NCBI GenBank assembly: GCA_965637545.1
Contig: OZ281495.1
Coordinates: 29,078,001 to 29,142,000, forward strand
Direction: 5' to 3'
Length of the DNA stretch: 64,000 nt
Source: Phallusia mammillata
Lineage: Eukaryota
Position numbers and translations under genes: made by a program. Position 1 is the stretch's first letter; each line of letters starts with the position of its first letter. Below are positions 24,786-58,796 of this stretch, in pieces. The notes beneath the pieces are model-generated. The model was not told the origin of the DNA and did no database searches. It worked only from the letters and a program-made list of their open reading frames with translations.

Positions 24786-24915
24786 AATGAACTGTTTGAG
24801 TTAGGTTGGTAGTGAACTTCCCTCTGTGTTGGAGTGTAGGTGAGGTAGCAGAAGACACACGGACGGAATCTGGATCTTGGATCGTCCCTCGTGGTGGAGG
24901 GGGAGGTTCGTGTTA
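24786..24915 (+). pseudogene. Orphan degenerate exon 3 of a B-type GTPase
   Basis: ggttggtagtgaacttc...ggaatctggatcttggatcgtccctcgtggtggag...ggggaggttcgtgtta matches about 38432-38563, including the donor site. Contains stops and a deletion. Confidence 0.85.
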
Positions 24916-34900: not shown

Positions 34901-35706
34901 AATCTTATACTGCAGGCTAGGTATACCTTAGTGAAGTTCAACACTTCCTGTGTGATAATAATTCTCTTATGAACCAAACAAAACTCGTTATACTCTCTTT
35001 TCTGCATAATTGACAGGCGATGGACACCAATGAATGCTCGGTTTCTGATCTTTACAAATATCACAATGATCAACTCCTTGAGGCACTGGGAAGATTTGAC
35101 AAAGTTGTAAAGTTGAGTGATAATTTGATCTTGGACTACAGGCGTAGGCTGGAGTCTGACATTGCCGACACTTATGAAGTTCTTTCTTCTTACTTTACCC
35201 AGAAGTTGGAGCAGAAAGACTCCGAGAGCAGGCGAGAAGAAGAGGCAAAGATTGCAAAAATGCGGGAGGGCCAACTGAGTGAGATGATAAAGAGGCAGGA
35301 AGAACAGATAAGAGAAACGGCTACAAAACACGCCAGGGATGCAGAGGAGATGAAGAAGCGCCTTGAAGAACAGGAGAAGCGCTTCCAGGAGGCAGAAGAA
35401 ACAAGAAAAAAGGAAGTGGAGGAAGCAAGCAGGCTGCTTGAAGAAAATCAGAGGCTGCACAAAGAGGCGGAAATTTTCAGAAAAATGGAGGCTGCCGAGG
35501 CAAAAGCTAGATATGAGGAGCAAAAGCAACTGATGCAAAGGATGGCGGATGACAACTTAAAACAGGCGCGGGAGGCAAGGAATAACTTCCAGAAGATGAA
35601 GGAGCGCTTTAAGGAAGAAGAAGAACTGCTAAAATCTGACCCTAAAAACACGTGTCCAAAATCAAGCAACAATCAGGAAATGACAAAGCAATGCAGTAGA
35701 AAATAG
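31961..35706 (+). CDS. Atlastin/GBP-family large GTPase with coiled coil (copy A), about 580 aa
   Basis: Exons 31961-31967, 32204-32388, about 32823-32990 (acceptor uncertain), 33206-33361, 33563-33619, 33715-33952, 34466-34641, 34771-34842, 35017-35706. Motifs GDKRMGKS, RRNTEGIWI, MDTQG, FLIRD. Ends QCSRK*. Confidence 0.78.
34140..34320. repeat. GC-rich cccgaa/cccgac-repeat element, probable MITE remnant, in a gene A intron
   Basis: Clustered cccgaacc/cccgaccc units. A shorter related piece lies at about 26110-26165. Termini not resolved. Confidence 0.45.
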
Positions 35707-37365
35707 ACATTTCTCTTGTCCTGAAAGGTTTCTGAACTGGAATTAAAGTTTTGGTGATTCGTTTATGTATTATGGGTCTGTGTTTACAATTTAACTTTGG
35801 ATTATAAAATGCACTTTGCCAAAAATGCGCAGTAATGATATCAAAAATAAATTTGTTACAAAAAATTAAGATTTTATTAATACTTTTTGTGGTTTTTGTT
35901 GTGTAGTTTTTGTTGTGTACTGAATGTAAAATGTAACCTAGTAAACAAGTGCGAATACCGTTTCACGACAAATGAAAGAATTGTGTGTTTTGTAAAACTT
36001 AAGTTTTATTAGAAAATTACACATGCTTTTGGTGCCCAGACATTGCAAATTAATCCAATATATTTGAAAAAACTATCTGTTTTTTTAATTGCGTTTTTAA
36101 AATCAACATTTAAACATCTTGCTCTTAGAGGTATTGCTGTGTTTTGCAAAACTGACTATATTTATATGGTCTTCCTTTGTAAATATAACTGGGAAGTTTA
36201 TGTATGCTTCTCGATGTTTTAGATTTATGTTGATTTTTGTTGGCACATTACCTAAATGAAAGTTCCTGATCTTGGTTATAACCTAACTAAAATAAAAACT
36301 TTTACCGGTAGGTGATGTGCGTGAGCAAAATAATGCCACGATCCACGTCTCGCGCCTGTGGAAAGCTTCATGCGCCTGGCGCACGCTTTGGTCGGCAATC
36401 GACAACTCTACGTCTGCTGGTAATGAGAAAATATCTCGAGGCACGTCCTGGCCATGCTGAAGAGCAAGGTTTCGCAGCAGTGTATGTAGTTAGTTCCGCT
36501 TTTAAATCCATCGAAAATTGCAGCCTGGAAAGAAATGAAATACGTGTTGTGTTAGGTTTATAATACTGTAGTATCAGATTATGAAAAGGTATTACGAAAA
36601 AAAGTTAATTCACTTCTCAGAAAACTGTTGTATTTGTTTTAGAGCTTTTAATGATCAACGAATACGCCGGGTTTATAACTGCTGAATGGCGCAAACTGTA
36701 AAGCGCAAAACTGTTATGCTGCATAAAATGGGATTGCACGTATGGTTGTACAAGCTATTTAAGTTGATCATAAATGATAATGTCAATACGGTATTCTGCA
36801 TGTAAACATAACGACAATGTTTTTAGCTGGCTGCAGTATTGGTTTAAAACTAATCGCAGTGTTGTCGTTATCCTGTGTAGCGTTCTAAAAATATCTACAT
36901 CACGTTATTGCGCAAACATGAAAAAACGCGCTTAAACTATCGTAGGTGCACTTGAAACAACTTTAGATATGTTTATTCGAATCGGTCACGAGGATCACGT
37001 GACAGCCCTGGCGCAAGCGACAACAGTGACGTAATTTTCAGTTCCTCTCTCTCCCACGCGAGCGAGTTCTTTCACCCTGCGGTGTTTTACTTGGTGATTT
37101 CCCGCAGAGGCGCGCCTTATGTACGATGGTAGAAACTGGGCTCTCAGTTGTCTGTCTTGCAATTCAATCTGTATGCAGATATGTTTTTTGTTGTAATTGT
37201 ATTCAGAGCTGCCTAAAAAGTGCATTTGCTGTATGGTTAGCTTACAATTATACTCGTAGATCTTAATTTAGTATATTTTATATTGTGTTTCTGTTATAAT
37301 CGCCTAATGTATATTGGTTTCAGATTTTTATGAAGTTTTATTAGCATTAAAAACCGCAAGACGCC

Positions 37366-40300
37366 ATGCCTGGAGGTAAGAATAACCTTTGTAACTAAAC
37401 GTTATTGTGTTTCTGTTGGTATCAGTATAAAGCATGTTTGCACAAACATCTTAACTGGGTTTACAGATCGCCGGTTGTGTGGATTTAAACTTAACCGATT
37501 GCAATTGTAAATACCAAATTGTTAACTTGACTGTTGAGTATTTAGAAACGTAAACTGTATGTTTAAATAATTGAAAAGGTGGCCATTTCCTAATAACTTT
37601 ACACCTGTCAAAATCATAGTACACCAGGCCCTTGAAGTCATGATACCACATTGACCACTCCCAACTTTAAACCTGTATTTATTTTTGGCTTATTTTTATT
37701 TCAAGACATTTTTGTTTCAGATAAACGGAGTTCTGTGTCGATTTTATCCAAGGGAAAAGATGATGTTTTCAAATTGGAAGTACCCGCATTAAAGAAGGTT
37801 TTGAAACCAGCTTGGGACAAACCTATCGCTATCATATCAGTATGTGGCGACAAACGGAAGGGAAAGTCCTTCATTCTCAACATGTTTCTACGCTATTTGG
37901 AACAGGTAAGACATCGAACTATGATGGGTGGTACTAAATATCCATTGATACCGCATGTTACCGCATGGTATACAACACCGTATTGTGCATGGTTTAAGGC
38001 ACGTGAGAATGTAAGCACCAACAAAAGTACATGAGCCTAGATTGTAGTGTATTTTTCAATTGCATACCCCCACCCCAAAAGCTCCAATTAGCCGAAGTCG
38101 ATTTCAAAAGTCCGCAAAATTATAATCTTTACGTAAAGTTAGTTTGTGTCCCATTAAAACTGCTTACCATGCGGTAGCATGCGGTATCAGGCGGTATTTA
38201 GTATCAACGACTGTCACCGGTCGTTTACAAGTTGTGGTTAAGCATTCCGTGTTGGAACCGCCTTTCTTGACTAACACGTTGTGTGAACTTCGATTTTAAT
38301 AGCTTTAAACCTTTATACTGGGATCAATAATGACAACTGTTTCTTGCCTAGTACTGAAATCAATGGTTTGTTTATCGTTTTCACCTGTTGTACAGACTGG
38401 AAGTGGCAGGGATCGCTCTACATCCATGAACCCGCTCAAGTGGGTTGGCAGTGAACTTCATCCTGCGTTCGAGTGGAGAGGAGGAAGTAGAAGGAACACA
38501 GAAGGAATCTGGATCTTAGATCGTCCTCTTATGGTGGAGACATCCGAAGGGGAGGTTCGTGTTATTGTTTCTGTACCAAAGATCAAATGCATGCGTCAGT
38601 TACTTTTGCTATCTCTACAGTTTGCCTGCCACAATATGTAACTCAGTAGCCACAAACATCATAAAGTTGGAGGTTTAAATTCAATAGCAAGCACTTTGTT
38701 GTTTATTATATGATAGCTGACAAGCTAAAACTGGTCAAATTATCAGCAAACCGTATGTAACGAACAGGTCGCCCTGTATCTGATGGACACACAAGGAATG
38801 TTCGACAGTCAAACCTCTAAGAAGGAATGTTCCCAGATTTTTGCTCTTGCGACCCTTATGAGCTCGCATCTCGTCTTTAACCTCATGAGACAAATACAAG
38901 CAAACGATCTTGAGTATCTTGACGTAAGTTAGATATTCAAGACGACACTCTAACTTGAATATAAAATTGAATAAAATTTCTTTCTACTTTAGTTTTGGAC
39001 GCAGACAGCCAAATACGTTGAAAGCGGGACATCTGAGGCATTTTTCCAGGTACTCCATGTAAAAATATTAAATATTTAGTCGCTTTATTGTAGTTGTTAC
39101 TAAATGAACTTTAAGCTGGTTAAGCTTTCAGCAGTTAACTCTGCGAAAAAGCACACATCACTCATGCAAGAACGCTACAATTACACTATAGTTTGACCGT
39201 TTATACCTCAATCAGTATGTGTGCACAATGTCAACAGGTTACACAACATTTTATAACACTGAATTCTTTTAAATAAAGTCCCTTATTCAAATAGAATCTT
39301 CTTTTCCTTCTACGCGATTTCTCTTTTGCCGATTACGGGTTTGGAATCGAAGCCGGAGAACGATATTTGAACGAGGAATTCACTGAATCGGACGACAAGG
39401 ATCGTGCAGTAAACGAAAACATACGTAACCTGAAGAACGTCTTCTTCAATGTGTCTGCGTTCGGAATGCCGGAACCAGAAAGATGTGTTACTGCACGGAA
39501 AGAGGAAGACCAACCGATTAACTTGCAAGGTATCTACACTATATACGCCCAACCTCTTGTTGCCGTTTAAAACTAAAATAAACTGAGAAAGCAAAGGGGT
39601 TGTGTCAACGTGAAGGCCAAATGTTTAGTCGAACGCATACATTACAGTTAAAGATGACGAGCTTTATATTGAACGCTGGTTTTAGTTAGCTAGGATTTAA
39701 GAATTATCGTGAATGTTATCTTGTAGGTTTTTTTGTTGTAAGACAACTGTTCTAACCATATTTACCAATTTTAACTTTTTTGTAGCTGCCGGAAAAGACT
39801 TCCTGAAATCGGCAACCGACTTGTTTAAATGTCTACGAAACGACATCAGTCCACTGCAATTGAACGGAAATCCGATGAGTGGTGCACAGTTATACGACTA
39901 CGTAGTAAATTGCAGCAAGAATCTGCTCAGCGACAAAATTCCAGATCCTTACACACTGAGTGAGGTAAAAATCCTATTTAGTGAAGCTTTTCTCTACTTG
40001 AACAAACTCATAACAGATCTGACAGTGGAGTGGAGAAGCAACAGTCTATTTTATGTTGTAAATTTGTTTCTTTTTTGCAGTCAGTCTCTATGTTTCAACT
40101 TCGCAGTCTCGTTGATCGCGAAAAGGATAAATATGAAGCGGATATGGAAAAGGTAACAGATCGGAGTTTATTAGAGTCTTGGATTTACTATTGTACTTTA
40201 TGTGTTGATTTTAGATTCTGGAGGATTTCAAAGGCAGCATGATCGACGTCCTTAACCAACACACAAAGCTTTTAAAAGAGGCTCTGGAGCGATATGACAC

Positions 40301-41283
40301 AACTTCCAAATTCGGAAGAGAGGATGTGATCTTGGACTACAGGGGCATGCTGGAGCTTGGGATAATGGAGGCCTACGATGTATTTTACTCTTACCAGGAG
40401 AAGAAGCTCCAGCTGAAAGACTCCGAGAACAGACGTGAGGAAGAAGCAAAAATTGCTCAAGAACGACACGATCAACTCAACGAACTGGTCGGAAGACAAG
40501 AGCAGCAGATGAAAGAAGCTGCCGCAAAACATGCAAAGGATGCAGAGGACCTGCGAGAATGCATTAAGGAGCAGGAGAGGCGCTTTAAAGAGGTAGAAGA
40601 GGCTAGAAAACGGGAAGCTGAAGAGGCAAGGAAAGTACTCGAGGAGCAGCAGAGGATGTTTAAAGAATCCGAGATCGCCAGAAAGAAGGAAACTGCTGAG
40701 GCGACTGCAAGGCTCAACGAGCAGAAGCGCGAAATTCAAAAGATGGCTAACGACCACTCCAAGGAAGCAGAAGAGGCGCGTAAACGCTTCAAGGAGCAAG
40801 AGGAACGGTTTCGCGAACAGGAAGAGCAACGTAAGAGGGATGCAGAGAAGGCGCGTGAGAGAAATGAAGAACAGAGGAAAGAGTACCAACGTCTGGAGGA
40901 GCTCCGACAACAGGAGGCAGAAGAGGCCAGGCAACAAGCTGAGAAGCAGTGGGAGCAACTGCAAGCTCTGGAAGAGAAGAGATCCAAGGAATCAAAAGAG
41001 GCTCGTGAAGTGATGGAGAAGCAACTGGAAACGATGAGAGAAACTATGGAACGACAGCGAAGAGAAATGGAGGTTTGTTTTGTGTTTTTCCTGTCGTTTA
41101 CTTGCACTATGTTTGACTTGCTTTAGGTAAACCACGAAAGCAGCTTTGATTTCCTTTCCGTGGTTTTAATCATTTTGTCATCGGTATTCAAAGACCTAAA
41201 AAGTACTTGTTTTTTAGGAAGAACAGGCAGTCGGAGGTATTGGAAAGATTATCGGTTGGGTCGCAAACAAATTCCTGAAATAA
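37366..41283 (+). CDS. Atlastin/GBP-family large GTPase with coiled coil and amphipathic tail (copy B), about 658 aa
   Basis: Exons 37366-37375, 37721-37905, 38396-38554, 38768-38923, 38993-39049, 39295-39529, 39786-39964, 40081-40152, 40215-41072, 41218-41283 (1977 nt, open). Motifs GDKRKGKS, FEWRGGSRRNTEGIWI, MDTQGMFD, FLLRD. Ends EEQAVGGIGKIIGWVANKFLK*. Confidence 0.9.
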
Positions 41284-42145
41284 AGGTGATAAAAATAAGT
41301 TATGAGTACTCTACTTCTACACTTTATAAATGACCAAACATTTATGTCATATTGTCATCATAACATATAGATTTTTGGCTATCTACATGTCTGGCACATG
41401 ACAGCAAACCAATGCAGTCCAAAACGCAAATACAATGCTTGTTGTGTGGAGCCTAATAATTGGGAAGCTTTTTTGTTTAAAGGTTTTCGTCTTCCTTGAC
41501 GGGCGGTGATCAAGAAAGCCTACTTGGATTTTTGTCTTGGCTTTATTTTCTTGTTGATATTTTTGCAATGTTCCGTATTGTACAGTGTTTCGTTTTTGTG
41601 CGCCTACAAAATGTTTTGTTATGCTTTTAATGTCGCTTGTTGTACTGAAAAACATTTCTTTACGAAATCTTAAACTGTTTTCGGAATAAACAGTGCTTTT
41701 ACTATGCGACCAACTAAGTGTATTGGCGAAGATGAAAAATATGTTTTTGCACTAGACCCTGCAAGTCTCACAAAAAACGGGACATGTTCTTGCGTGGGTT
41801 GTGTGCCAACCGTTTGCGTGGGGGCGTTGTGTAAAGAATCGTTCCGTTTGTCAAGAAATTCCAAAGGTCATCGGCTTTCCAATGAGGAACTGGTTATGCG
41901 CGGGGTGGATTAATTGTCTGCATCAAATCTGTAACTCCATACCTCTGTAACAGTCGCTTGTTGTTTGACGTGGTTCCTTTTAAATAGATTATTTGCTTGG
42001 TATTTGTTTCAATGTTTTGTACGCCATTGATTTATATCGCAGAAACCCGATACCTAACAATCGATTGGCAAGTTTTGCTGACAGAGTAGTGCGACTGGAT
42101 TTGCCGCGTCTGGCGTAGACGGTTGAAAATCGCTGAATGTGTATA

Positions 42146-42440
42146 GGGTTGCCATCGACATGGACCCTAAAGTAAAGACAACCGAAAAAATGCACTTTTA
42201 TACGATTCCAAACAAACGTGCTGGAACAAAACTTTGCGGTTATACGATTAAATATCACATGCCATATATTATGCCAAAAACAATCTGTTCCAGCAACTCC
42301 TTGTTCGTAGAAATTACTTTGTACATCTCACAACAGCTGAGGTCTAGGTTTACTTTAATTTGTAGCAGGGACTTGACTGGGATTAGACATTGCCCTTCAA
42401 AAAAGGACAAATATTATAAATAAGGACGGTATGGCAATCT
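42146..42440. mobile_element. hAT-like MITE
   Basis: Imperfect TIR GGGTTGCCAT / ATGGCAATCT flanked by the 8 bp direct repeat TGTGTATA. Confidence 0.6.
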
Positions 42441-42489
42441 TGTGTATAGGCGAACTGAAATAAAAGCACACAACAGCATACATCGTGAT

Positions 42490-43060
42490 TAAAACCCTTT
42501 AAGTTTACTGAGCAAATATCGTAGTTGTTTGCAAAGCAATAAATAAGTCACCCAAACGACTTACGTCAAGTCGCTGACCCTGTCTTTTAAGGATTAAACA
42601 GTCACTGTGTTGCCTTGCACTTTAAATTTTAAAACGGGATTGCGTTTGTGCGGCATGAGATTAAATGAAACCTGCATCGACCTTCGAAACTTTAGTTTCG
42701 CCCAGACAGCCAAACAGGCGTCACTTTGTCTATGATAGCGGTTGTTTGAATGTCGTCATTTAAAACTTTACCGGTATCACGTGAGCAACGAATGTTTACA
42801 TGCAGATCGCCTACGGTCAGTTTCGGTTCCTCTCTCGTAAGGGCAATCAGCTTACTTGGAGAGGCGAGAGTAAAGTTTCGCCACCGTCAGAAAACTTTTT
42901 AAACTTTAATTTGCAACTCCAAGCGTTTTGCACTCGAAGCTGAGGAGAATAAATGAGCGCTCCACACCGTTTCTTCTTTTCTCCTGTGTGCTCCTCGCTT
43001 GCGCGGTGTCGTGGGTGTAAGCTGGATAAGGTTTTTGATAAACAGAGTTCTCCGTTTAAC
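42490..43060 (+). promoter_or_regulatory. Conserved upstream non-coding module of gene C
   Basis: Shares blocks with 50260-50830: aagtttactgagcaaatatcgtagttgtttgcaaag, gaaactttagtttcgcccagacag, tcgcctacggtc, agtttcgccaccg. Confidence 0.55.
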
Positions 43061-43981
43061 ATTGTTTTAGAATGAAACTAAAAGCGATCCACTGTTGCAC
43101 ACGCTGGAAAGGCCTTGCATCGATATACATTTTGATTTGAATGCAGTTGAAAAGGCAAATGGGATTTTTCAAATTAAACAGTGTTAAAAATGTCCAAGAA
43201 GTGCACAAAATGTGTGTTGCTTTATATTGGGACGTTTTTTTAATGTTGAAATAACAAAACCACATCCAGGCACCAATTTCAAATAACGTAGGCAAGGTGG
43301 TATTGTTTGGGGAGTTCTATAATAGGAAAGCTGTTACCAGTTATCAGTAGCCCAGGAGTTCTAAAATGTTAAACAAACATTTAAGCCAGCAAGTTTTGCC
43401 ACGAACATGTGACTGTGGATTCAGTTCCTATTTTGACTCATAACTTATATACGGTCGATGACGTTACAGTCATACTTTTTTGGTTCCTCTGTGGACTCAT
43501 GTGAATATTGAGTGAAATTAGAGTCAGTAAGTTTGATTCCCTTTTGACGCCGCACCAGCGAATCGCTCGAAAGGGCAAATCTGCCTTGGTATTGTCTGCG
43601 TGTAGGAATGTTATTGAGCGCAGCCGGCACGGTGCTTCCAGACATGTGACTAGTATAGCGAAACTTTGGACTAAAGGTGGTTTTTGCTAGCCAGTTGTCA
43701 TCGGTTAAAGGGTTATTTGGTTATTTGGATTCATACAGAAAGCAAAGTATTAGATTGTTGCACAGTTATTGTCACGTAAAAGTAGAAAAGTTATTTAGTC
43801 CGCTTTGACATCTGAGTTTTAGTCCGTAATTAAGTCAGATCGTTGCTGTATGTGGCTTGTTTCGCCCACGCCAAAAATTCTCTCGACTCAATTTAAATTC
43901 GTACGTATTTCTTTTGCAGAAACTTGATGTTTTAAGGAAAAACTTAAAATGACACTGTGACAGCACTGAAAAAGTATTGCT

Positions 43982-46900
43982 ATGACAGGTATGTATGCGC
44001 ACAAACAGTACGTAGGTCAATATTTGCAGTCTGTTTCTACTTTTTCCACACATTTTTCGTTTAAGGACTCATAGCCAATATTGAGATTTATTGTGTTCAT
44101 ACATTTGCCGTCGTACTAAATCTATCAAGGTTACGCTGCTATATTACCGCACATTTGTTTGGTTTCATGGCAACCTGACATATAAAAGCAAGCTAAACTT
44201 GAGGTCAATCGTTAATGCTTGATTTAAACCCGATACCTTATCGTAGTGGGACAAGGACTGCGCAGTTTATGACCCTGGGAAACACGTAAGGAAAATCACT
44301 AAACCCACAGTCTGCAGACCAATAAACATTACAACAAAGATCAACTTTCATTTCCCTTGTATACATTGCAATATTGCCTAAGTTTAACATTTTTTCAGAC
44401 AATTACAACACCGTCCAAGTTCTGATCAAAGGCCCAGACGACTCGTTTGATCTTAATAAAGACGGTTTGAAAGCAGCTTTGAAGAATGCATGGGAATATC
44501 CTGTTTGTATCATCGCCATCTGTGGTGACAAAAGAAAGGGAAAATCCTTTATTCTCAACATGTTTCTTCGTTACCTTATAAAGGTAGAATTATAATGTAT
44601 AAAGTTTATGTTTGTAATTGTACCAAACACTTTCACTGACTTAATCTAAAAAGTTGTTTAAAGCAATGTACTGACTTCGTTGTTGCCTATAAAAACAGTT
44701 GTGATTCAGGATTAACGACAGAGGTGTCAAACCGTAATCTCAAGACAATTAGCTCTTTTACCAAAAAACTGCTCTGCATAACCAACAACGTCAGATTTTT
44801 TTATGGGGAGATTTAGTAATTTTTTATTAATTTTGGGTACTTTTTTGCAGGGTCTACCAAAAACCTCACTATTGTCATACTGGTGGGGTACCAAGGAAGA
44901 TCTACATGCAGCTTTCGAGTGGAGAGGAGGGTCAAGAAGAAACACAGAAGGAATCTGGATTCTTGACAAACCAATCCTGGTCGATACCCTCGATGGCAAA
45001 GTGAATATTTTTATTTATTTTTGCTACGAAGTTCGATCAAGATATAACTTTGCAAAACAGAAATTTGACAACAGCTCGTATTAGCAAAGTGTAGTTTGTA
45101 CTGCTAGCTAACGCATACATTGTTGAGTAATAACCTACAGTCAAAATAGGCCTGAAAACATCTTTATATTTAACCAGGTTGCTCTTTACTTAATGGACAC
45201 ACAAGGAATGTTCGACAGTCAAACCTCCAAGAGGGAATGTTCCCAGATTTTTGCTCTTGCCACGCTTATGAGCTCACAGCTTGTCTTCAACCTCATGAAA
45301 CAAATACAAGCAAACGATCTTGAGTATCTTGACGTAAGTTTGATAATATTTACCTCGACAATATCGTTTCAAAACACGTGTGTACCCATCTGATTTAATT
45401 ACATAAAAAATGTCTAAGACTTTAACTGAACAAAACGATACAAACCGTTAAAAAACGACGTTATATAGTAATGTGAAAAGCGTTTTAGAACGATAGTTTT
45501 TATGCAAGCTTTATAAGTTGTCATAATGTTTGTTATTAAACTTAGACGTTTTCTGGCGACCACAATAGACATTTTTCTTTGCCTTGTAGTTTTGGACGCA
45601 GACGGCGAAATTTGTAAACACTGGATCAGACGAGGCATTTTTTCAGGTATTTCTTTTGATTTTATGCCTTTATTTAAAACTTATAGTAATGAGAGTTAAC
45701 ACCATTGTGTAATACACAAATCAAAATTACCATGAACATGAAAATTCGAAATTGCAGAGTTTGCTGTTCCTCATCCGGGACTTTTCCTTTCCCGATTATG
45801 GTTTTGGAATCCAAGCAGGGGAACGTTATCTTCAGGAGGAGTTGAAAGAGTCTGACGACAAAACGGCTACAGTGAACGAAAACATCAGAAACTTAAGAAA
45901 CGTGTTTTCCAGTGTAAATGCATTTGGAATGCCAACACCTCATAAATCCGTCACTGCGCGAAAAGAGGAAGACAAACCGGTTAATTTGCAGTGTAAGAAT
46001 AAAAATAGAAGTGCCGTTTACAATTATTTTTGCCATTTTACCAAAACGTGTATTTAAAAAAAAATAAACATGTTTATTACTGCATATTTCAGATGCTGGA
46101 AAATCGTTCATGCAGAATGCTGAGGACCTGTTTAAGCATCTTAAGGAAAATATCTCTCCTCTGAGTTTAAACGGAAGTCCGATGAGCGGAGAACAACTGT
46201 ACGACTACGTGTTGAGTTGCGGCGAAAATCTGCTTAGTGACCAAGTTCCTGATCCAGTTAGTCTGAGTGAGGTGAGTCCCATTGTTTTCAAAATTGTAAA
46301 GCAGCATAGTAGTTTTGTGATTTTACCTGAACACTGAACACACATTGTTAGGAGTGGTTTTAAACGTGTTATTGCATTCTGCAGTCGGTTTCAAAGTTCC
46401 AACTTGGAAAACTGGTGGAACAAGAAAAGGCCGAATACGAGAGAATCATGAAAGAGGTAAGTTCAGTTTTAATTCCAGAAAATGATTACGTAGGCTATTT
46501 TCAAAGTGGTTTAGTCCTACCCTGGTAGTAAATTTTCATAAAAATACAATGTGTCCAATTGAGTACGCAGTCAAGCTCGTCTCACGTGCATTTAATACAA
46601 AGTAAATACTTCGTTTGTCTTCAGTGAAAACGGACAGCTTTGTGCTGTAATTGTTTTCACACAACTCAGATTTTCGGAAAAGTGTCAAAAACTGGACTTG
46701 ATTTGACCTTATCTATGAGCGTGTACTGTTTGCAGCTTATATCGAAACCTGTTTTATATTTTTGTTGTGAGGCCAACTTGCCAACTCTTTAGTTTTGTGT
46801 ACTATCTTGCAACACTATTATACCTCACAGGCGATGGACACCTACGAAGGTACGCTTTCTGATCTCTATAAATATCACGAGCTGCAACTCCTCGAGGGGC

Positions 46901-48519
46901 TGGGAAGATTTGACAAGGTTCATAAGTTCGGCAGAGATGATGTGATTATGGACTACAGAAATACGCTCAAGCTGGACATTGTCGAAATTTACAACGTCCT
47001 CTCAACCTATTTTACCCAAAAGTTAGAGCTGAAAGACTCCGAGAACAAGCGAGAGGAAGAGGCAAGGATTGCCAAACTAAGGGAAGATCAATTGGGCGAC
47101 ATGGTACAGAGACAGGAAGATCAAATGAAAGAAACAGCTGCAAAACACGCCAGGGATGCAGAGGAGATGAAGAAGCGACTTGAAGAACAAGAGAAGCGTT
47201 TTCAGGAAGCAGAAGAACAAAGAAAAACGGAAACGGAGGAAGCAAGAAAGCTGCTGGAAGATCAACAGAGGCTACACAAAGAAGCGGAAATCGCGCGAAG
47301 CATGGAGGCTGCCGAGGCAAAAGCTCGGTTTGAGGATCAAAAGCAGAAGATTCAGAAAATGGAAAATGACAATTCGAAACAGGCGCAGGAGGCACGAAAG
47401 AACTTCCAGCAGATGGAGGCGCGTCACAGGCGGGAAGAACAAGAAAGAAAAGCTGACGCAGAAAAGGCGCGTCAAAATTATGAGCAACAAATGAAAGATT
47501 ACAAAACGATGCAGGAGAAAAAAGAAACAGAGGCTAAATCAGCGAGAGAACAGCAACAGAAAATGTGGGACCAGCAAAAAGCTGCTGACGATCGTCGATA
47601 CGAGGAGGCCAAAGCAGCACAAGCAAGAACAGAAAAGCAATTACAGGAAATGCGACAAAAACTGCAAAATCACCCGAGGCGTGTAAGTATTTTTTCATCA
47701 CATATGGGTTTTTTTAATTCTAAACTGCAAATTGCAGTAAATGTTATACTGCTTTTTTTGTAAACATGTTGTTCAATCACGTTTGTAGAGCTCTTCTGAC
47801 AAATGTAATTATATTCCGACGTTTCGACGTCTCATATAGGTCGTCTTCATCAGGGTAGATAACACTGAATGCGACTAGTACAGTGCATTCACGCGTTATC
47901 ACAAGGCCGCCGTATTGATATTAATGCGGCGTCTGTTGTGGCCCGGGAGCCTGACTATAGGAAAAGATTATTTCTTGAGTCATGGAATATTCACCAACGG
48001 GGTAACACAATGAACATCAAAACAGACGTGATGCTTTCAACGTGCTACAGGCACCTCCTTAAAGATTCTCGCGCGGTGCTTTCGTTGCGTTGTGACGTGC
48101 TTGCGTTCCATTATTTTTCCTTTGTTTATCGTGCACTGTCCTCGTTGCATTCAGTTTTATTTACCCGGATGAAGACCAGTGCTGGATTAACCATTAGGCA
48201 AAGTAGGCACGTGCCTACAGGCCAGTCAAAAATCCAGGCCACAAAATTATGACAATGATTAGGCAACACTGATAATTCTTTTTTTTCTTTGGCAACCCTG
48301 ATTTTCGGGCCACTTATAAAATGTGCCTACTTCCCAGCAGACCCTTAATCCGGCAGTGATGAAGACGACCTGTACATTTCTCAGAAGAGCTATACAAACT
48401 TGATATTATGCCTTGATATGGCAGCAAATAGCTTATATGTTGGTCAATAGTCAAAAACCTTAATTATACTTGCTTAACTTGTTTTCCAGAAACGAAAGGA
48501 TAAGTGCATCATCTCATGA
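43982..48519 (+). CDS. Atlastin/GBP-family large GTPase with coiled coil and CaaX box (copy C), about 640 aa
   Basis: Exons 43982-43988, 44399-44583, 44851-45000, 45178-45333, 45590-45646, 45758-45992, 46093-46271, 46385-46456, 46831-47682, 48490-48519 (1923 nt, open). G1-G4 intact. Ends KRKDKCIIS*. Confidence 0.9.
47781..48399. mobile_element. Penelope-like retroelement remnant (GIY-YIG C-terminal fragment, inverted ends, hammerhead core) in the last intron of gene C
   Basis: Plus-strand peptide HALSQGRRIDINAASVVAREPDYRKRLFLESWNIHQRGNTMNIKTDVMLSTCYRHLLK resembles the end of PLE GIY-YIG endonucleases. Inverted repeats at 47781-47807/48373-48399 and 47838-47852/48357-48371. Hammerhead core on the minus strand at 47853-47818. 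Absent from the 139 bp equivalent intron of gene D. Confidence 0.75.
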
Positions 48520-50259
48520 ACTCATTTTCTATTTGTCTTTGAAAACTGCTTTTAATTTTTGTTTTGTTCTATTTCTTGTGTGAATATTCATGTGTGAATA
48601 TTTTTATGACACTATTTTCATGTGCTGGGTGTGATTTGTTTAAAATCTTTTAACTAATATTTGTTTTAGTGTTTTATACGAGACTGATTTTCATCGCTAT
48701 GTACCTATATTCCAAAAACATTTTACTGATCTATTTTGTAAACATGTTAGTCAATCAATACACGTCAAAAATCCTATTTTTACTTGCTTAACTTGTTTTA
48801 CAGAGACGAAGGTAACTGCATCATCTGAACCAATGAACCATTTCCAGTTCTTGCTTTGCCAATGAAAAATGCCTTTTGTTTTTGTTATATTGTTAGTGTG
48901 AATATCCAAAGCTGTTTTTATGATAATGGTTTCATGTGTTGGGTGTAATTTCTTACCAAGCTAAATATCTCTTATATTTTGTAACTTTTCGTTAAACAGA
49001 CATCCACTTCTTGAATTTCAACCAAACTTATCGGTCTTTGTAACTATTTTTGTGCGGTTTGGCAATTGTAAAATTGTTTACATGGTTTTGCATTGCTACA
49101 TCTATACGTGTTTAATCTTACTTCTGTTGCATTTTTTGTGTGTGATGTTATCGATACCTTTTCGATTTATGCTTTTTTGCTTTCATATGTCCTTTTTTGC
49201 ACTTGACAGAAAGCAGTAAAAAAGAAAAAAAGCCTAGAAGAGCGTACTTGTTTTGTGTCACTTAATATTGTGTCATTTTGTAATGTGATTGATGTGTATT
49301 AGGCACTTTTGCTTGTTGTTTGACGTGGTCCTTTTAAAATCATATATTTGATATTTGTTTCAGTGTTTAGTACGCGATTGCTTTACGTTACGACATCCCA
49401 CAACTCTCTCAGTATCTCAGAATTTTTTTTAATATATCAATTGTGAAAAACATTGCATAAATCGGTTAAAGTGTGTGCAATAAAACCGTGGGTGTTAAAA
49501 GCCCCTGGACTTGACTTCTAATCTGTTTCATACTTCCAAAAACTTGATAGGTTGCCTATGTGCACCTGAACATTACAGTGCACAAATATTCTGCATCGCA
49601 TTTTCAATAACGTGTGGTATTAATTAGCGAAACCAGAGTTTCGTCTAAAGCAGTGGTTCCCAACCTTTTTGTAGTCACGGACCCCTTTTATAAATTTTAT
49701 CGGTCCGCGCACCCCCAACGTAATTTAGTCTTTTTTCGTTTCCTTCATTCATTATACCTATACGTTATTATACTTTTTTGGGGGCAGAATTGTAATCAAC
49801 CTTCACAGTCCTAATAAGGTTCTGTACTGTAGCAGTCAATGCAACAAAGAGATAAATTTTCTGGTGTACAATACTTAAAACAAAGCACAAAGAATTATAT
49901 TGTTAATGTATGTTGTGATGTCACAATGGAGGAACAATCACAAGTTTTTCTTGATCCAAGGATTTGATAAACAGTTTGCACTCAGATGCAGGATTGTAAA
50001 AACGGTTTGGGAACTTAAAAATATTGTACTGTTGTTGTTAATACTACTACAAATGTTTGTTGCTGCGTCTGATGTAGTCGACCAGAAAACTTTTGACACA
50101 GTATAGGGCCTATAACATTTTATGTTACAAAACTTATATATCTATGATTGCGAACTACAATAGCGAATAGCTACAACCAAAATCACTTTTCATGGAAAAA
50201 GATAACTCAGTAATAAACCGCTGCCCACAAAGTGCCCCTTAGCATAGTCGTAATTAAGG

Positions 50260-50830
50260 TTCCTTAAAGTTTACTGAGCAAATATCGTAGTTGTTTGCAA
50301 AGTAACAAATAATTCAACCACACGACATACGTTAAGTCGCTGACCTTGCATTTTAAAGATTTACGCTACTACCATATTGCTTTAACTTTAATGTAAAAAC
50401 GCGTTTGGTGAGGCTCGAAATTTAATAAAACGTACATCGATCGTTGAAACTTTAGTTTCGCCCAGACAGACCAACAGACGTCACGGTGCCAAGGTCAACG
50501 CTGTGCAAATGTCGTGATCCAAAACCCAACATACATAACCGCTATCTCGTCACCAATGAATGTTAACATGCAGTTCGCCTACGGTCGGTTCAGATTTCAC
50601 TTTAATAAAGGGCGATCAACCTAACTTGGATAGGCAAAAATAGAGTTTCGCCACCGATCAGAAACCTCCCAACACCATTTTACCACTCCGGGCGTTTTCA
50701 ACAGCCACTCCAAGCTGACGAGGACAAATGAGCCGCTTATGCTTGTTTCTTCCTTTCTCCCATGCGTTACTCGCTTGCGCGGCGTCGCTGCTCCACAAGC
50801 CAGGTTCAATTTCTGTTGAACAGAGTTTTC
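50260..50830 (+). promoter_or_regulatory. Conserved upstream non-coding module of gene D
   Basis: Paralogous to 42490-43060 and, on the opposite strand, to 1-300. Confidence 0.55.
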
Positions 50831-51734
50831 ATCTACTTGTACTTTTCCATTTTACACTGCTTTAGAATAGAATTACGACAGCTATCTACTATTGGGCTAT
50901 GCTGGAAATGCATTGCATGGATATGTATTTTGATTTGAATAAGTTTGGGAAGGTAAATAGGTCGAGATATTTAAAACTAAACTGTGTTTTAACAGTTGTC
51001 GGAATTCCAGGAGTTTCAAAACGCGAAACAAACACTCAAGTCAGCAAGTTTCGGTACGAACATAATACTGTAGATTCGGTTCCTCATTGAACTCCTATCT
51101 ACGGTCGGTGACGTTACAGTCAGACTTTTCGGTTCCCTTTTGTCGCCGCACCAGCGGGAATGCTTGCGCAGGGTAAGTCCGTGTTGGGAATATCATTCGG
51201 GACAGCTTGTGGGTGTTTTAGCGTAGGCGGCATGGTTTAAGACTGTCGGGCTTGTGAATTGCATGCAGAAAGTTTCGTTGAGGCATCGAAAGCAGTTGTG
51301 TTGGGTTAATTTTGCATTCCACTAAAAATACAACGGCATAATTGTACTGAAAAATTAAATGGTTTTTGCTGGTCAGTTCTCTTTGAAGGTTGAGATTTTA
51401 TTTTGTTAGCTAGATTTAGATATGCTAGGGTCGTTTTTTTGTACAGTTGCGCCGGTTTTTGCCACGTTTAGCTTAAAAGAACGTGGTTTGTTGTGACTTT
51501 TAGCACAAAGATTATTCAGTCACATTTGACAACCGAGTTTTAACCCGTATTTCAGTCAAACCGTTGCTGTGTGTGGCCACTAACTAGCCCCGAGCTAGTA
51601 TACTGTCGGGCTAGCATACTGTCGAGCGAGAAGTATATTCAAACTATTAACTTTTTTGTTTACAGATACTTGATGGTATAAGAAAAAAACGTCGTTTTAA
51701 ACTTCGCTGGTGACTGCATTGAAAGAGCATTGCA

Positions 51735-54700
51735 ATGACAGGTATGTGTGTGCACTGACAAACAGTATTTTGCAGTTTGTTTTTCTCGTTTTGTCATGTT
51801 TGACCACTCCTATATAAACACACATCCAATATTGTCGACAATGAAATGTCTGGTTACAAGCGTATGTTTGTACGGTTAAGAGCACATGTCAACTTTATTT
51901 CAAGGATGGATTTAATCTCGTTTTGTTGGTATATAACCGAGGTTGCTCACAATCACAGCCTTCGACATTTTAGCACACACTGGAAAAACTGTGGTTGTAT
52001 TCATACGTTTGCCCTCTAATCGACGTGTACTATATCTTTTAAGGATACGCTGCTTTATTTTCGCAAAGTTGTATAGTGTTATAGCAACATGACACATAAA
52101 AGCAAGGCGATCTTAAACTCAGCCATACATACCTGATTTATTTCAATCCCTTGCAAGTAGGACAAAGTTTGCGGAGCGGTTAATGACTCTGGAAAACACG
52201 TAAAAGAAACCACTAAATCCATAGTTTTCAGACCTATAAGCACGTCATAAAAGATCAACTTTGATTGTTTTTATTGCTAAAATACCTTAGATAGTCTGTT
52301 ACCATGTTTTAAGACAAGTACAGCACCGTCCAAGTTCTGATCAAAGGCGCCGATGACTCGTTCGATCTTAATAAAGTCGGTTTGAAAGCGGCTTTGAAGG
52401 GTGCATGGGAATATCCTGTTTGTATCATCGCCATCTGTGGTGACAAGAGAAAGGGAAAATCCTTTATTCTCAACATGTTTCTTCGTTACCTTGTCAAGGT
52501 AGATTTATAATGTAAGATCTAGGTTGAGTTAATAAATTGCGGTTTTATCTAGAGCTATTGACAATTTCTTTGGCTAAAGAGGTATTACGGGAACGTAATG
52601 AAGTCTTCTATTCCCTGGAAAAGCAGTAAAGGTTGTGTGGGGTTTAAACAATTCTGACTAAGCACATTTTAGCACACAGGGCTGTAATGGGTTCTTCCTT
52701 GTCTGCGCTTTAAAATAAGCCGTGTTAGCACACATTTCAATTGTTTATCAGGCAATAAAATTGACCCTTTAAAAAATACCCTTTAAAAATACATTTGCTG
52801 ACTCATTTATGAAAAGAAAGGGCAAAACTTGGCGGAGCAGTTTTGCTGTCACACTCATCATTACGTCCGGTTTGCTTTAGAGTTTTAGGGGGACTTTATA
52901 ACTTTTTATTGATTGCCAAAGTTAAAGCGACGTATATTGGACTTTAGGATAAATTGGTGGCATACCATTACAAAATCGTTTCCAAATGTGTTTTTTTGTT
53001 ACCGACACCCGTGACTAGTATTTTCTTCTGATCGGACAAACCAGCAATGCCTTCGCTTTAAAATAAATTGAGAAATTGTTTACAGGGCTTACCTGGTAAA
53101 TCAAGTCTACTGTCATACGTGTGGGGTTCAAAGGAAGATCTACATGCCGCCTTCGAGTGGAGAGGAGGGTCAAGAAGAAACACAGAAGGAATCTGGATCC
53201 TTGACAAACCAATCCTGGTTGATACCCAAGATGGCAAGGTGAACATTTATTGTGTTTCAGTTTTTTTAAGTTCTACAGCTTTCAACTTTAAAGGGAAAAA
53301 CACATTTGGGGTCCTATTTTAACAAAGTACAGTTGCCTTTTCGCCTGTCAACAAACATGTGATTGACAACAGCTCATAACAATACAGCGCTAGTCTTTAC
53401 TGCCGTCTAGCGGATACAAGGTTACTTAACCTACGGCCAAAAGGGACTTTGATAAGCTTGTGAACATTTTTATATTTAACCAGGTTGCTGTTTACCTAAT
53501 GGATACACAAGGAATGTTCGACAGTCAAACCTCTAAGAAGGAATGTTCCCAAATTTTTGCTCTTGCCACGCTTATGAGCTCGCAACTTGTCTTTAACCTC
53601 ATGAGACAAATACAAGCAAACGATCTTGAGTATCTTGACGTAAGTTTGATAACATATTCTCCCAACAATTTGCCAGTTGAAGGCGCTTTCCTGTTTTCTG
53701 GACACTAAAGCCTTTAAGACTTTGAAGAAATAAAACGTTACAAACAGTTAAAAAACGACATATTCACAAAATTAGTGTTTTTGAAACTATTGCTGTTATG
53801 TATGCTTCAAAAGTTAGGTATTATTTTTGGTAAGCTGCAGACGTGCACACTGTTTCGACCTATATTGTCAGTGCAGCTGGTGAGAAGACAACGCCGTATT
53901 GGCTGGTGTAGCCATTTTTTATTTGCTTTGTAGTTTTGGACGCAGACGGCCAAATTCGTGAACACTGGATCAGACGAGGCATTTTTTCAGGTATTCGTTA
54001 CATTTATTCTTCTGTTTGAAATTCCGTGTTAACACCACTGCAGAATACCAAACCAAAATTGCCAGAAATTTAAACCATACTAAAATTGCAGAACTTGCTG
54101 TTTCTTATCCGGGACTTTTCCTTTCCGGATTATGGCTTCGGAATCCAAGCAGGGGAACGTTATCTGCAGGAGGAGTTAAAAGAGTCTGACGACAAAACGG
54201 CTACAGTGAACGAAAACATCAGAAACTTAAGAAACGTGTTTACCAGTGTAAAAGCATTTGGAATGCCAACACCTGATAAATCCGTCACTGCGCGAAAAGA
54301 GGAAGACAAACCGGTTAATTTGCAATGTAAGGATTTACAACTAATACAAATGTCACTAATAATTGTTTTATAAACGTTTATTCTCGTGAAACTTTTGACA
54401 AACGCTTCGTCTTTGAGAAACCAACTTACACAAATTGAAATTGTTTGTTGCTGCATTTGTAGATGCTGGAAAACCGTTTATGAAGCACGCCAACGACATG
54501 TTTAAGTATCTGCAAACAAACATCACCCCTCTGACCTTAAACGGAAGTCCGATGAGCGGCGAGCAGCTGTACGACTACGTGTTGAATTGCAGCGAAAATC
54601 TTCTCAGTGACCAAGTTCCTGACCCATTTACTCTAAGTGAGGTGAGTCCCAGGGTTCCAAAAGCCGTGTAGTAATGCTGTCATTTTACCTGAGATTCTGG

Positions 54701-56226
54701 TCGGAGTGTTTTCTTATCTTGTTTTTGCATTTTGCAGTCAGTTGCGAAGTTCCAACTTGGCAAGTTGGTGGAACAGGAAAAGACCGAATACGAGAGAGTC
54801 ATGAAAGAGGTAGCAACTATATGAATTTGTGAAATTTATTAGATATTTTTAGTGGGATTAGCTCCATTCTATACAGGTTCTGAGTTGTGGTAAAATTTGG
54901 CGAATTAGGCTAAATACAAAGCTCAACAGGTCCTGTGCGCATTTAACGCAGAGTGGCTGATTGGCTTCACATCTGCAAAATACTGACTGTTCTGTGTTGT
55001 AACTGTTTTACGCCCAACGCTATTTTACTGAGAAACTTTAAAAACAAGCGTTCTGATTTCAAACAAAAACAAAATTCAATTATACTGTATGCACCTTTAC
55101 GAACTTCCAAATCTAACGAAACCTGAAATATACTTTTGTTGTGAGACCAACTTGCCAAATTTTTAGTTTCTATATACTATACTGCAACACGATCATACAT
55201 CACAGGCGATGGATACCTACGACGGTTCGCTTTCTGATCTCTACAAATATCACGAGCTTCAACTTCTCGAGGCACTGGGAAGATTTGACAAGGTTCATAA
55301 GTTCGGCAGAGATGATGTGATTATGGACTACAGGCGTACGCTGGAGTCTGATGTTGCCGACATTTACGACGTCCTGTCTTCCTATTTTACCCAAAAGTTA
55401 GAGCTAAAAGACTCCGAGAATAAGCGAGAGGAAGAGGCAAAGATTGCAAAAATGCGAGAAGATCAATTGGGCGACATGGTCAAAAGACAGGAAGACCAGA
55501 TGAAAGAAACAGCTGCAAAGCACGCCAGGGACGCGGAGGAGATGAAGAAGCGCCTTGAAGAACAGGAGAAGCGCTTCCAGGAGGCAGAAGAACAAAGAAA
55601 AAAAGAAGCCGAAGAAGCAAGAAAGCTCATGGAAGATCAACAGAGGCTGCACAAAGAGGCTGAAATCTCGAGAAAAAGGGAAGCTGCCGAGGCAAAAGCT
55701 AGGTTTGAGGAACAAAAGCAAGATATGCGAAAAATGGCAGATGACAATTCGAAACAGGCACAGGAGGCACGAAAGAACTTCCAAGAGATGCAGGAGCGTT
55801 ACAAGCGTGAAGAGCAAGAGAGAAAAGCTGGCGCAGAAAAGGCACGTCAAAGTTATGAGCAGCAAATGAAAGATTACAAAGCAATGCAGGAGGCCAGAGA
55901 GAGGGAAGTCAAAGCAGCAAGAGAACAACAACAGAAGATGTGGGATCAAATGAAAGCTGCTGACGATCGTCGATACGAGGAGTCCAAAGTAGCACAAGCA
56001 AGAACAGAGCGGCAACTAGAGCAAATGCGACGAGATCTGGAAAATCAGCGAAATTACGTAAGTACTGATAACAGAGTTTTGTCACCTATCTCTTTAAGTT
56101 CTAAAATCCGACTTACAATTTTGCTGCCCTGATTTGTAAATATGTCAATACAAGGATTCCCAGATCCTAACTTTTCTTGCCTAATTTCTTTTGCAGAGAC
56201 GAAGTGATCCGTGCATCATCTCTTAA
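51735..56226 (+). CDS. Atlastin/GBP-family large GTPase with coiled coil and CaaX box (copy D), about 641 aa
   Basis: Exons 51735-51741, 52314-52498, 53086-53238, 53484-53639, 53934-53990, 54092-54326, 54463-54641, 54738-54809, 55206-56057, 56197-56226 (1926 nt, open). G1-G4 intact. Ends RRSDPCIIS*. Confidence 0.9.
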
Positions 56227-57139
56227 ACCCGTTTTTGCTTGGCGTATGAAGACTACTTTTTATTGTCCTTGTTCTACTTTTAGTGTGACTACCCATGTCA
56301 GTTTTTATGGCAATGTTTTATGTGCTTGATGTTAGTAATTCTGCCCCGCGCAAATATCTTTCATATTTCTTACCATTTCTTCGATCAAACAAACAATAAC
56401 TTTTTATGTGGCAAATAAAAACCTAGACCAAACTTTTTGGGCTTTGTAACTATTTTTATGCGTTTACTCTCTCATTGGCTATGGTGAAACTGTTGTTTTA
56501 TGTAATGTGGCATAATAAAAACATTGTATGGTTTCGCTTTGCCACATCTAAATGAGCTACCTTGCGTTGTCATAACTTGCATTGTCATTAAATGTTGTGT
56601 GTTGCTTATTTTTTATTTTTTTGTAACATGACCTTGATTTGCGATTGTTGCATTCATGTCTTTCATGGGCTTTACTATGACTTAATAACTAAAATTTTGA
56701 ACACTTTCAAAAATACCTTTGAATGCGGCAAAATTAAACTATGCTGAGCACCATGTTTAACATGCATATGCCTATATCGTGCACACAAAAACGCACAGAC
56801 AATAGTACACATATCAAACGCTGTAATCATCCATGCTCACCAATATATAGCACGAAGAAACTGATCAGTTGGTTTTGTGTATTAAAACTTGAAATCTCCC
56901 CTTTGTTTAAATTAAACGGACCAAGGTCAGAGCAATGATACTATACAACACGATCGGACACTTCTGTCTTAACCAATCAGATGTTTCTGCCGTGTCACGC
57001 ACCACTGAGATTACGTTACGGACAGGTAGTTTCCTTCCGCAAAGTGCAGCCTGTTGGTCAAGTCTTACAATTTTCGTGCTCTTTTGCCAATTTTGCTCGG
57101 TTAAACGTTCAGGGATCTTTGATTATCTGTTATTTAAAA

Positions 57140-58796
57140 ATGTCAAAGCATTGTTGCATTCCGGGGTGTGCTGGGAAACGCCCGAACCCTTTGTATAGCG
57201 TACCAGCGAAAAGGTTTTGTCCATCTGACAAAAAGGACTGGGCTAAAAAGTTGGAATGCATTATTTTGTCACTGCGAGCTGATCGTGATATTCATGATTT
57301 GTTTTTACGAGACAGTGTCAAAATATGTGACAAACACTTTGCTGAAGAGGATTTTGTGCAAGGTAAGTCTGTTAAAACTAGGTACAAGGAGTTTACAGAG
57401 CTGTATTGCATAATTTTAGACAATCAGGTGACCGACCTAACATATTTTACAGCCAAGAAGCGAAAGGTGTTAAGGACAGGGGCAATCCCAATCTTTCACA
57501 TGCCGAAAAAATTATATTCCAGTACTGCAGTTGAGCGTAGACCACAAAAACACCGAGTTTTTGTAGAAAAATGTTTATACAAAACATTTGCAACATTTGT
57601 CAGTGCAGCAAAGCAGTACGTGGCCACATCAAACTCCTGGAAGGTTAAAAACGTGTCAGATTCCAATATACACATATCCAAATCAAGTCAATATGACCAG
57701 GAGGAGTATTCAGTGTATGTTAATGTAAATATGGAAATTGATGTTCATCATTTTGGATGGCCAGGAAAAGTTACTCTTGAAGTTAAAGAAAACACAGTTC
57801 ATCAGCTTTTGATGTTTGTGGAAAATTTAAATATCTGTAAGGGAATACAATGTGGTGACCAGGAAAATGAAACAAAGCTTGCAGTCAAGCAAATACTCAC
57901 GAGCCCATGCAAGCCATTTGAAAATAGTCCACCAATGATAACACATTATGCAACCAGGTTAGAGTCTCAGTAGTTACAAGTTGATTTGCTTGAGCACAGG
58001 TGTGTTTATTCACAAACGATTGTTTTTTCCTCAGAAATACTGATTGCATTTTATTTGTGGAGAAGGGCCATGACATATGTAAGAAGTGCAAAAATGAAGC
58101 AGGGACAATTCAAAAAAGGATAAAAGAACGCGTCCGTTACAGAAAAGTTGTATTGCACCAACCACTACAAAAAGTTTCAGTGTCCAGATCATTAGGTTCC
58201 AGAGTAAAGGAAACATTAGTAGATAAACAGGAAAAGTAAGACTTATGTTTATTTAATTGAGGGCACTGACAGCAGTAACAAGTTAACATTAATCAAGAAA
58301 GTATCTAAAGACTAGTATGATAGAAATGTATATTTGCAGAATATGTCATTTACAAGCCCAAATTGATGATCTGTTACAAAACCCTGCAAAACAAATAACT
58401 TTAGAAAAGGATGCGCATTATGATATTCAACAATGTTTACTGACAGGCCAGTATTTTTGAAGAGGTTTATTCTGTTTAGCTGAAGTGTGAAAAAATCAAT
58501 TCATATATCTGTATTTTAGAGAAGGAAAATGGTACAATTGACAAATTTCATGATCTCTTTTGGTCTCAACAAACAAAATTAAATCTAATTGAAAAAAAAT
58601 CCCACCGCTTTCATCCAGATTTAATCAAGTTAGTACAATTTTTGAAAAATATATGTATTGAGTATAGCAGTAATGTATATACATCATGTATAGGTACTCA
58701 TTAATGCTGTATGGAAAGGGCCCAAAAGCTTACAAAATGTTACAGGATACTGGCTTGCTTGTCTTGCCTTCTCAACGAACTCTTAGGCGATATCGG
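57140..58796 (+). CDS. THAP-domain P-element-like transposase, N-terminal half only
   Basis: Exons approx. 57140-57362, 57453-57957, 58035-58235, 58341-58447, 58520-58628, 58696-58796 (one donor would be GC; internal junctions tentative). THAP motif MSKHCCIPGC...W...CDKHF...LRTGAIPIF, then LFWSQQ...RFHPDLIKYSLMLYGKGPKAYKMLQDTGLLVLPSQRTLRRY. No RNase H-like catalytic region follows. Confidence 0.75.

Follow-up and report, generated by a model that had tools for sequence, protein, structure and literature searches.

In a 64,000-nucleotide window of the 240-Mb genome of the ascidian (sea squirt) Phallusia mammillata (G000:C2:29078001-29142000), four tandem genes on the forward strand, here called A, B, C and D (32-56 kb of the window; each with a PF02263 G domain), encode proteins that are, judged by their sequences, GTPases of the atlastin branch which have lost the transmembrane hairpin. 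The extreme C-termini of most family members come from tiny terminal exons of two kinds, one specifying a CaaX box (CIIS) preceded by basic residues and the other a basic peptide with the residues GWV. The intact protein would comprise a GTPase domain of the atlastin type together with a three-helix bundle (residues ~1-400), a stalk of ~240 residues, and the short tail on its mini-exon. We consider it probable that these are soluble GTPases anchored either by a farnesylated CIIS or by a GWV helix, and that related copies thereby bind membranes differently.

An earlier note on this DNA had proposed that the coiled-coil exon of these genes ends in a phase-0 donor and that a small last exon sets the tail. 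These mini-exons exist and are spliced in the way proposed: in the sequence itself, the last introns of B, C and D are all canonical GT..AG introns in phase 0, and the same joins recur in public protein records (P0001 and P0003) and in RNA-like contigs of D. The features that define the tails and the models of C and D are as follows:

35017-35706, plus strand: last exon of A, ending within the exon in ...TKQCSRK and a stop codon (35704-35706), with no further exon; P0002 maps here.
40215-41072, plus strand: stalk exon of B (exon 9 of 10), with the phase-0 donor GAG/GTTTGT at 41072/41073; equivalent to residues 352-637 of P0003.
41218-41283, plus strand: terminal mini-exon of B, EEQAVGGIGKIIGWVANKFLK and a stop (21 codons plus the stop), behind the acceptor ttttttag; equivalent to residues 638-658 of P0003.
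43982-48519, plus strand: gene C, 10 exons and 640 codons, with all introns GT-AG; exons 1-5 at 43982-43988, 44399-44583, 44851-45000, 45178-45333 and 45590-45646, exons 6-10 at 45758-45992, 46093-46271, 46385-46456, 46831-47682 and 48490-48519.
47682/47683, plus strand: last junction of C, where the stalk exon ends in CGT/GTAAGT; the acceptor ttttccag precedes 48490.
48490-48519, plus strand: terminal mini-exon of C, KRKDKCIIS and a stop, that is, basic residues and then the CaaX box.
51735-56226, plus strand: gene D, 10 exons and 641 codons, intact and 86% identical to C; exons 1-5 at 51735-51741, 52314-52498, 53086-53238, 53484-53639 and 53934-53990, exons 6-10 at 54092-54326, 54463-54641, 54738-54809, 55206-56057 and 56197-56226.
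56057/56058, plus strand: last junction of D, donor TAC/GTAAGT; the acceptor ttttgcag precedes 56197.
56197-56226, plus strand: terminal mini-exon of D, RRSDPCIIS with its CaaX box and a stop.

The four genes are transcribed, and three of them correspond exon by exon to public proteins. The ten-exon spliced translation of C equals P0001 (640 residues, 'atlastin-2-like', ending ...HPRRKRKDKCIIS) save for two residues, and from this slight difference between record and assembly we infer that P0001 derives from the transcripts of another individual. P0003 (658 residues, ending ...RREMEEEQAVGGIGKIIGWVANKFLK) corresponds to B in the same manner, and P0002 (505 residues, ending ...TKQCSRK) to A; the junctions of B and C are supported by exact agreement with these records, and the last junction of D by RNA-like contigs. 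The model of D, transferred from C, has only GT-AG introns and no internal stops, and contigs of four public runs (three RNA-like ones from three studies and one DNA run) were placed on 50420-56410. All three RNA-like runs yield contigs with the join 56057>56197, which skips 139 nucleotides between GT and AG with 0 mismatches, and one of them also carries the junctions 54326>54463, 54641>54738 and 54809>55206, making four D junctions in total. Within this interval the RNA-like runs cover exons only; the DNA run covers the whole region, retains the last intron of D and lacks the spliced join. For D, a single joined form was seen in the three RNA-like runs.

Accordingly, C and D each have a cysteine at position -4 of the true C-terminus, as established by the spliced D contigs and by P0001 (...KDKCIIS). 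Their tails, KRKDKCIIS and RRSDPCIIS, combine basic residues with a canonical CaaX box just as had been read from the letters. CIIS satisfies the rule for farnesylation, with aliphatic a1 and a2 positions and a terminal residue of the farnesyl-selecting set (S, M, Q, A, C). Yeast Ras2 ends in the same box (PMC11152559), which has been found to be 100% prenylated in yeast and modified by the human farnesyltransferase but not geranylgeranylated (PMC10320760 Table 3; PMC11152559). Farnesylation of C and D is predicted from this motif, and the tail may also select the membrane. Both genes are under purifying selection: at a synonymous divergence (dS) of 0.41, the ratio of nonsynonymous to synonymous divergence (dN/dS) lies at 0.15-0.19 across the G domain, bundle and stalk. 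The sole change within the CIIS codons is a single synonymous one, and the five preceding codons are altered at three positions.

Genome-wide, the DNA pattern for C[IV]IS followed by a stop has 30 matches, against 19 for the reversed control, and five of the 30 are the tails of C, D and three genes, X1, X2 and X3, of a more distant cluster 1.2 Mb away (C2:30.35-30.37 Mb), whose stalks are ~35% identical to that of D:

L026 (G000:C2:30363578-30363592), minus strand: tail of X1, ...ERKQKKKK/ANNPCIIS and a stop.
L006 5412-5438, minus strand: tail of X3, ...ERRQKKK/ADKLCVIS and a stop.
G000:C2:30357325-30357339: tail of X2, CIIS and a stop, seen as the 15-base match alone.

The boxes of X1 and X3 lie on an 8-codon, phase-0 last exon, preceded by a short exon that ends in a run of lysines. 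Chance origin of the CIIS tails is excluded, because the CIIS codons have been kept between C and D and because five of the 30 pattern matches prove to be atlastin-like tails. Our survey of tails covered 21 extra loci of the ~50 with a GBP domain in this genome, and clear CaaX mini-exons among them occur only in the cluster at C2:30.35-30.37 Mb; a DNA search of the genome with the tail region of D returned its self-match only, this kind of search being too insensitive. One of 18 further loci, L014 3096-3134 (G000:C6, ~20.905 Mb, plus strand), offers an unverified candidate mini-exon, LLRGRKLICIVL and a stop (...RGRKLICIVL), in a different atlastin/GBP-like subfamily; its CIVL would be a box of the geranylgeranyl type, with the preceding frame guessed.

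The majority tail of the family is, by its sequence, not the CaaX box but the basic GWV peptide of 21-22 residues. In copy E, a phase-0 donor leads to a mini-exon that encodes DDPPIRGLRSFAGWVGRKIFD and a stop, the mini-exons of G and H read EDPPIRGVRSFLGWVGRKIAD and DDSPPVRGFASFARWVGRRIVT, each with a stop, and in F the tail EDPPIRGLRSFAGWVGRKIVD and its stop directly continue the stalk exon, with no intron between. These tails are homologous to each other and to that of B, which we assign to the majority type because it has the same length and carries GWV at the identical place. The earlier note was hence right that B receives a separate 22-codon exon (21 codons and the stop), but its description of that exon as unrelated does not hold. 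At the DNA level, the tail exons of copies E-H share 73-88% identity, and the introns preceding them are without detectable similarity. In the cores of the GWV tails, hydrophobic moments range over 0.51-0.63, the net charge is +3 or +4, and F, V, L, I and A occupy one face; the values for B (moment 0.51, net charge +3) are equalled by 0.7% of shuffles. Such features suggest that the peptide may be a membrane-binding amphipathic helix.

Gene A uses neither module. As had been noticed, it has no extra exon and ends in CSRK, a point on which the sequence and P0002 agree; its stalk is truncated past ~137 homologous residues, with homology to the stalk of D ending at ~35637. CSRK was considered as a weak CaaX box and rejected, as R at a2 and K at X, both disfavored for farnesyltransferase, argue against prenylation (PMC10320760); in the screen of that study, positive charge at X was restrictive, as was lysine in a1/a2 combinations. 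The public record of A begins at exon 2, and hence is without the P-loop exon, and the P-loop-like exon of the gene is altered. The view that paralogs share one scaffold and differ in their tails therefore stands, and its extension to A as an additional targeting mode falls with the poor box, the cut stalk and the record that starts at exon 2.

As for the scaffold, phmmer searches against PDB recover atlastin-1 and atlastin-3 at 1e-48 to 1e-49 over residues 7-402, that is, across the G domain and the three-helix bundle, followed by RNF112 at 1e-26 and the GBPs at 1e-10 to 1e-7. Foldseek with the AlphaFold model gives the same order, with atlastin-1 first (E 4e-22), RNF112 next and the GBPs after. 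Pfam recognizes PF02263 at 3e-45 and no second family at E<=0.01; at this threshold, neither the GBP C-terminal helical domain nor a RING domain is matched. No transmembrane segment was found, the top 19-residue Kyte-Doolittle mean (1.26-1.35) being located within the G domain. We assign the proteins to the atlastin branch because of the concordant ranking by PDB search and by fold and because no hydrophobic segment lies outside the G domain. Identity as GBPs was considered and rejected, given hits to GBPs of 1e-10 or weaker against 1e-49 for atlastins and the agreeing order from Foldseek. For the same reason the likeness of the tails to the CTIS of GBP1, drawn in the earlier note, is sound as an analogy and fails as a statement of kinship.

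Beyond the bundle, the region from residue 401 to the end contains 23-27% D+E and 24-25% K+R, and ~48% of the final ~240 residues are charged. In the AlphaFold model of P0001, the stalk is predicted as two helices (383-497 and 499-626) followed by coil (627-640), with residues 628-640, which bear on the accessibility of the stretch before the CaaX box, at a predicted local distance difference test score (pLDDT) <50 in a model of modest confidence. An exhaustive HMMER search with the stalk exon of D against 1.84 billion representative proteins returned two representatives, both from Phallusia mammillata, and the stalk is therefore without detectable relatives elsewhere.

The stalk exon has eight copies in the genome, all inside 100 kb: those of A-D and those of four minus-strand copies, E, F, G and H, that adjoin the left edge of the window. 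Together they constitute an eight-copy tandem family restricted to Phallusia mammillata, in a genome that carries at least 40 genes with a GBP/atlastin G domain. B, C, D, E and H appear intact, G is interrupted by stop codons, and F is without exons 1-4 and has lost its last intron; together with A, the latter two appear to be decaying copies. The array is a birth-and-death cluster, as intact copies stand beside the decayed A, F and G and beside a fragment of a further stalk exon:

L002 (G000:C2:29048888-29049553), minus strand: copy F, with its GWV tail in frame with the stalk exon and the last intron lost.
30144-30396, plus strand: 3'-terminal remnant of a stalk exon like that of B, frameshifted, with the donor retained and no tail exon after it.
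47776-48404, no strand assigned: insertion of ~630 bp in the last intron of C, with 32-nucleotide inverted ends and inner inverted repeats.
48804-48828, plus strand: second, decayed tandem copy of the CaaX mini-exon of C, with a 2-nucleotide deletion, reading RRR and a stop if spliced in phase 0.

The insertion accounts for the greater length of the last intron in C (807 nucleotides) than in D (139 nucleotides). The duplicate lies 285 nucleotides downstream of the tail exon of C and has an intact acceptor, and its flanks are collinear with the tail region of D over a longer span than those of the exon that C uses.

Other elements accompany the array. An isolated exon-2-like fragment at 24814-24888 of the window and the remnant at 30144-30396 are what is left of one more, ruined copy upstream of A. 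Four divergent paralogs, here termed M-type, are interspersed among the long-stalk copies (2690-4628 and 10585-13412 of the window, minus strand; G000:C2:29052246-29054143 and 29058708-29060377); their G-domain exons are 35-58% identical to D, and both the P-loop and the RGGS motif are altered. Directly downstream of D, at 56981-57973 on the plus strand, lies an open reading frame of 330 codons with a THAP domain (PF05485, E 2.8e-5) that is probably transposon-derived.

The distribution of the two tails does not follow the relationships of the genes that carry them. Maximum-likelihood analysis of the gene bodies yields the tree (M-type,(X,(B,(A,((C,D),((E,H),(F,G))))))), whose branches inside the family are moderately supported. 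The approximately unbiased test rejects a single clade of all GWV-tailed genes, and likewise one of all CaaX-tailed genes (p-AU 0.028 and 0.020, respectively). The nesting of C and D among GWV copies, and with it the incongruence between tail type and gene body, is suggestive and not firm, since the rows behind the tree were assembled exon by exon from matches and the tree includes long branches. Taken at face value, it implies that the terminal exon was exchanged between paralogs or that an ancestor had both exons and its descendants kept one. No GWV exon was found near C, D or A, nor a CaaX exon near B or E-H, and past the donor site there is no similarity between C/D and the other copies. 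We put forward tentatively, as something short of an even prospect, that the two tail modules are exchangeable cassettes and that the CaaX mini-exon of C and D is common to them and the cluster 1.2 Mb away. The cassettes could have moved by non-allelic recombination that swapped the terminal exon between paralogs; alternatively, an ancestor with both exons could have left one to each descendant.

In the mechanism that we favor for the family, CIIS would be farnesylated by farnesyltransferase and then trimmed and methylated, and the farnesyl group with its neighboring basic residues would provide C and D with a peripheral anchor on acidic membranes, while B, E and H would attach through a basic amphipathic GWV helix. 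GTP-dependent pairing of the atlastin-type G domains may then bring about tethering or coating at the end of the long charged stalk, such that the proteins would act as soluble or peripheral GTP-driven tethers or coats, not as integral fusogens. Several points weigh against this proposal. Lipidation and localization are inferred from the tails; the RNA label of the runs is a guess, which the zero coverage of introns and intergenic DNA fits without proving; and E and H are without RNA support, with only 0.09-0.26 of the sampled words of the H tail region present in the RNA-like runs. Moreover, helix formation by the GWV peptides is not assured, given that their moments rank no higher than the top 1-6% of shuffles and that glycine is abundant in the peptides. 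The AlphaFold model is likewise of modest confidence, with a mean pLDDT of 65, and its two stalk helices may form either a hairpin or an extended stalk.

The same observations can be set against other accounts of the tails. In a birth-and-death cluster, the tails might be neutral by-products of 3'-end turnover, with breakpoints or insertions replacing the last exon, any short reading frame after an acceptor becoming the new end, and the CaaX box unused for targeting. The end of A, a truncated stalk and then CSRK, is an accident of just this kind, and the loss of the first exons in F, the stop codons in G, the termination of similarity between C/D and the other copies at the donor site, and the decayed tail-exon duplicate and last-intron insertion in C all accord with such turnover. 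We nevertheless regard it as unlikely to explain the tails, for CIIS has been kept in C and D over a dS of 0.41 with one synonymous change (dN/dS 0.18), a mini-exon with the same C[IV]IS-stop also terminates three genes in the second cluster, these tails making up five of the 30 pattern matches, and the GWV exon is conserved in E-H when the introns are not. That each gene uses both CaaX and GWV exons as splice isoforms, an idea to which the two tandem CaaX exon copies of C lend some color, is highly improbable: nothing GWV-like lies near C or D and nothing CaaX-like in the vicinity of B, E, F, G or H, the extra copy in C carries a frameshift, and D shows only one joined form.

Alternatively, the farnesyl group might act chiefly as a switch, within the molecule or between proteins, and less as a tag that selects a membrane. 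It would then either lie against the stalk or the bundle until GTP opens the protein, as in GBP1, or be taken up by a partner, and the type of tail would not assign different membrane addresses. The two long stalk helices of the predicted model might double back so that the tail comes to lie close to the bundle, and in GBP1 the farnesyl is buried in the closed monomer (review PMC9005921). Against this stand the basic residues beside the CaaX box (KRKDK in C; KQKKKK in X1), the classic partner of a farnesyl group for acidic membranes, and we hold the switch to be improbable as well. Basic residues pair with the farnesyl group in this way in the acidic-membrane binding of K-Ras4B.

Two better-known groups offer a comparison: atlastins are integral fusogens of the endoplasmic reticulum (ER), and GBPs are lipid-anchored soluble coats of cell-autonomous immunity. 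With atlastin-1 and atlastin-3, ER membrane-fusion GTPases, the Phallusia proteins have in common the G domain and three-helix bundle. However, atlastins have two close transmembrane segments after the bundle, where the Phallusia proteins are without a hairpin and instead have the charged helical stalk of ~240 residues. The C-terminus of true atlastins is an amphipathic helix that binds membranes, and by its features the GWV tail may be a parallel to it; C and D are without such a tail, and, unlike in atlastins, the tail of the Phallusia proteins, be it CaaX or GWV, is on its own mini-exon. RNF112 (neurolastin), which ranks second among the structural relatives of the G domain and bundle, shows weaker similarity than the atlastins and has a RING domain without a counterpart here.

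Like C and D, the GBPs are soluble members of the PF02263 superfamily with a helical stalk and a CaaX box beside basic residues. They are distant in sequence (E 1e-10), have a C-terminal helical domain without a Pfam counterpart in the Phallusia proteins, and do not have their box on a separate exon of 8-9 codons. Human GBP1 is farnesylated (CTIS after arginines) and GBP2 and GBP5 are geranylgeranylated, the lipid signal being present in some paralogs only (PMC9005921). Recombinant human GBP1 has been farnesylated by co-expressing it with farnesyltransferase (PMC2903825). The resemblance to GBP1 is best read, by analogy, as one of design and not of descent, pointing to convergence from an independent origin. 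K-Ras4B and yeast Ras2 similarly combine a polybasic stretch with a farnesylated CaaX box, the Ras2 box being CIIS itself (PMC11152559), but there on a small GTPase and here on a 640-residue GTPase of the dynamin superfamily. BmAtlastin-n of Bombyx mori, likened here by description, is a cytoplasmic protein reported as antiviral (PMC4926086; PMC9005921), and no lipid-anchor tail is reported for it in these texts. We found no published description of a CaaX-ended atlastin, and the invertebrate members of the superfamily have been described as poorly understood (PMC9005921).

The near-identical proteins of this array, differing mainly in an anchor of 9 or 21 residues, constitute a natural set for relating anchor chemistry to membrane address and activity. 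The eggs and embryos of Phallusia are transparent and mRNA injection into them is easy, and they are therefore suited to such anchor experiments. If the cassette proposal is true, the exchange of an exon of 30-66 nucleotides would amount to the natural re-addressing of a membrane-remodeling GTPase, and a lipid-anchored, GBP-like coat or tether would have arisen in the atlastin branch independently of the GBPs. More generally, a chordate lineage appears to have made the atlastin scaffold soluble and furnished it with a GBP-like CaaX or an amphipathic tail, and the design of a GTPase with a long stalk and a lipid tail looks convergent.

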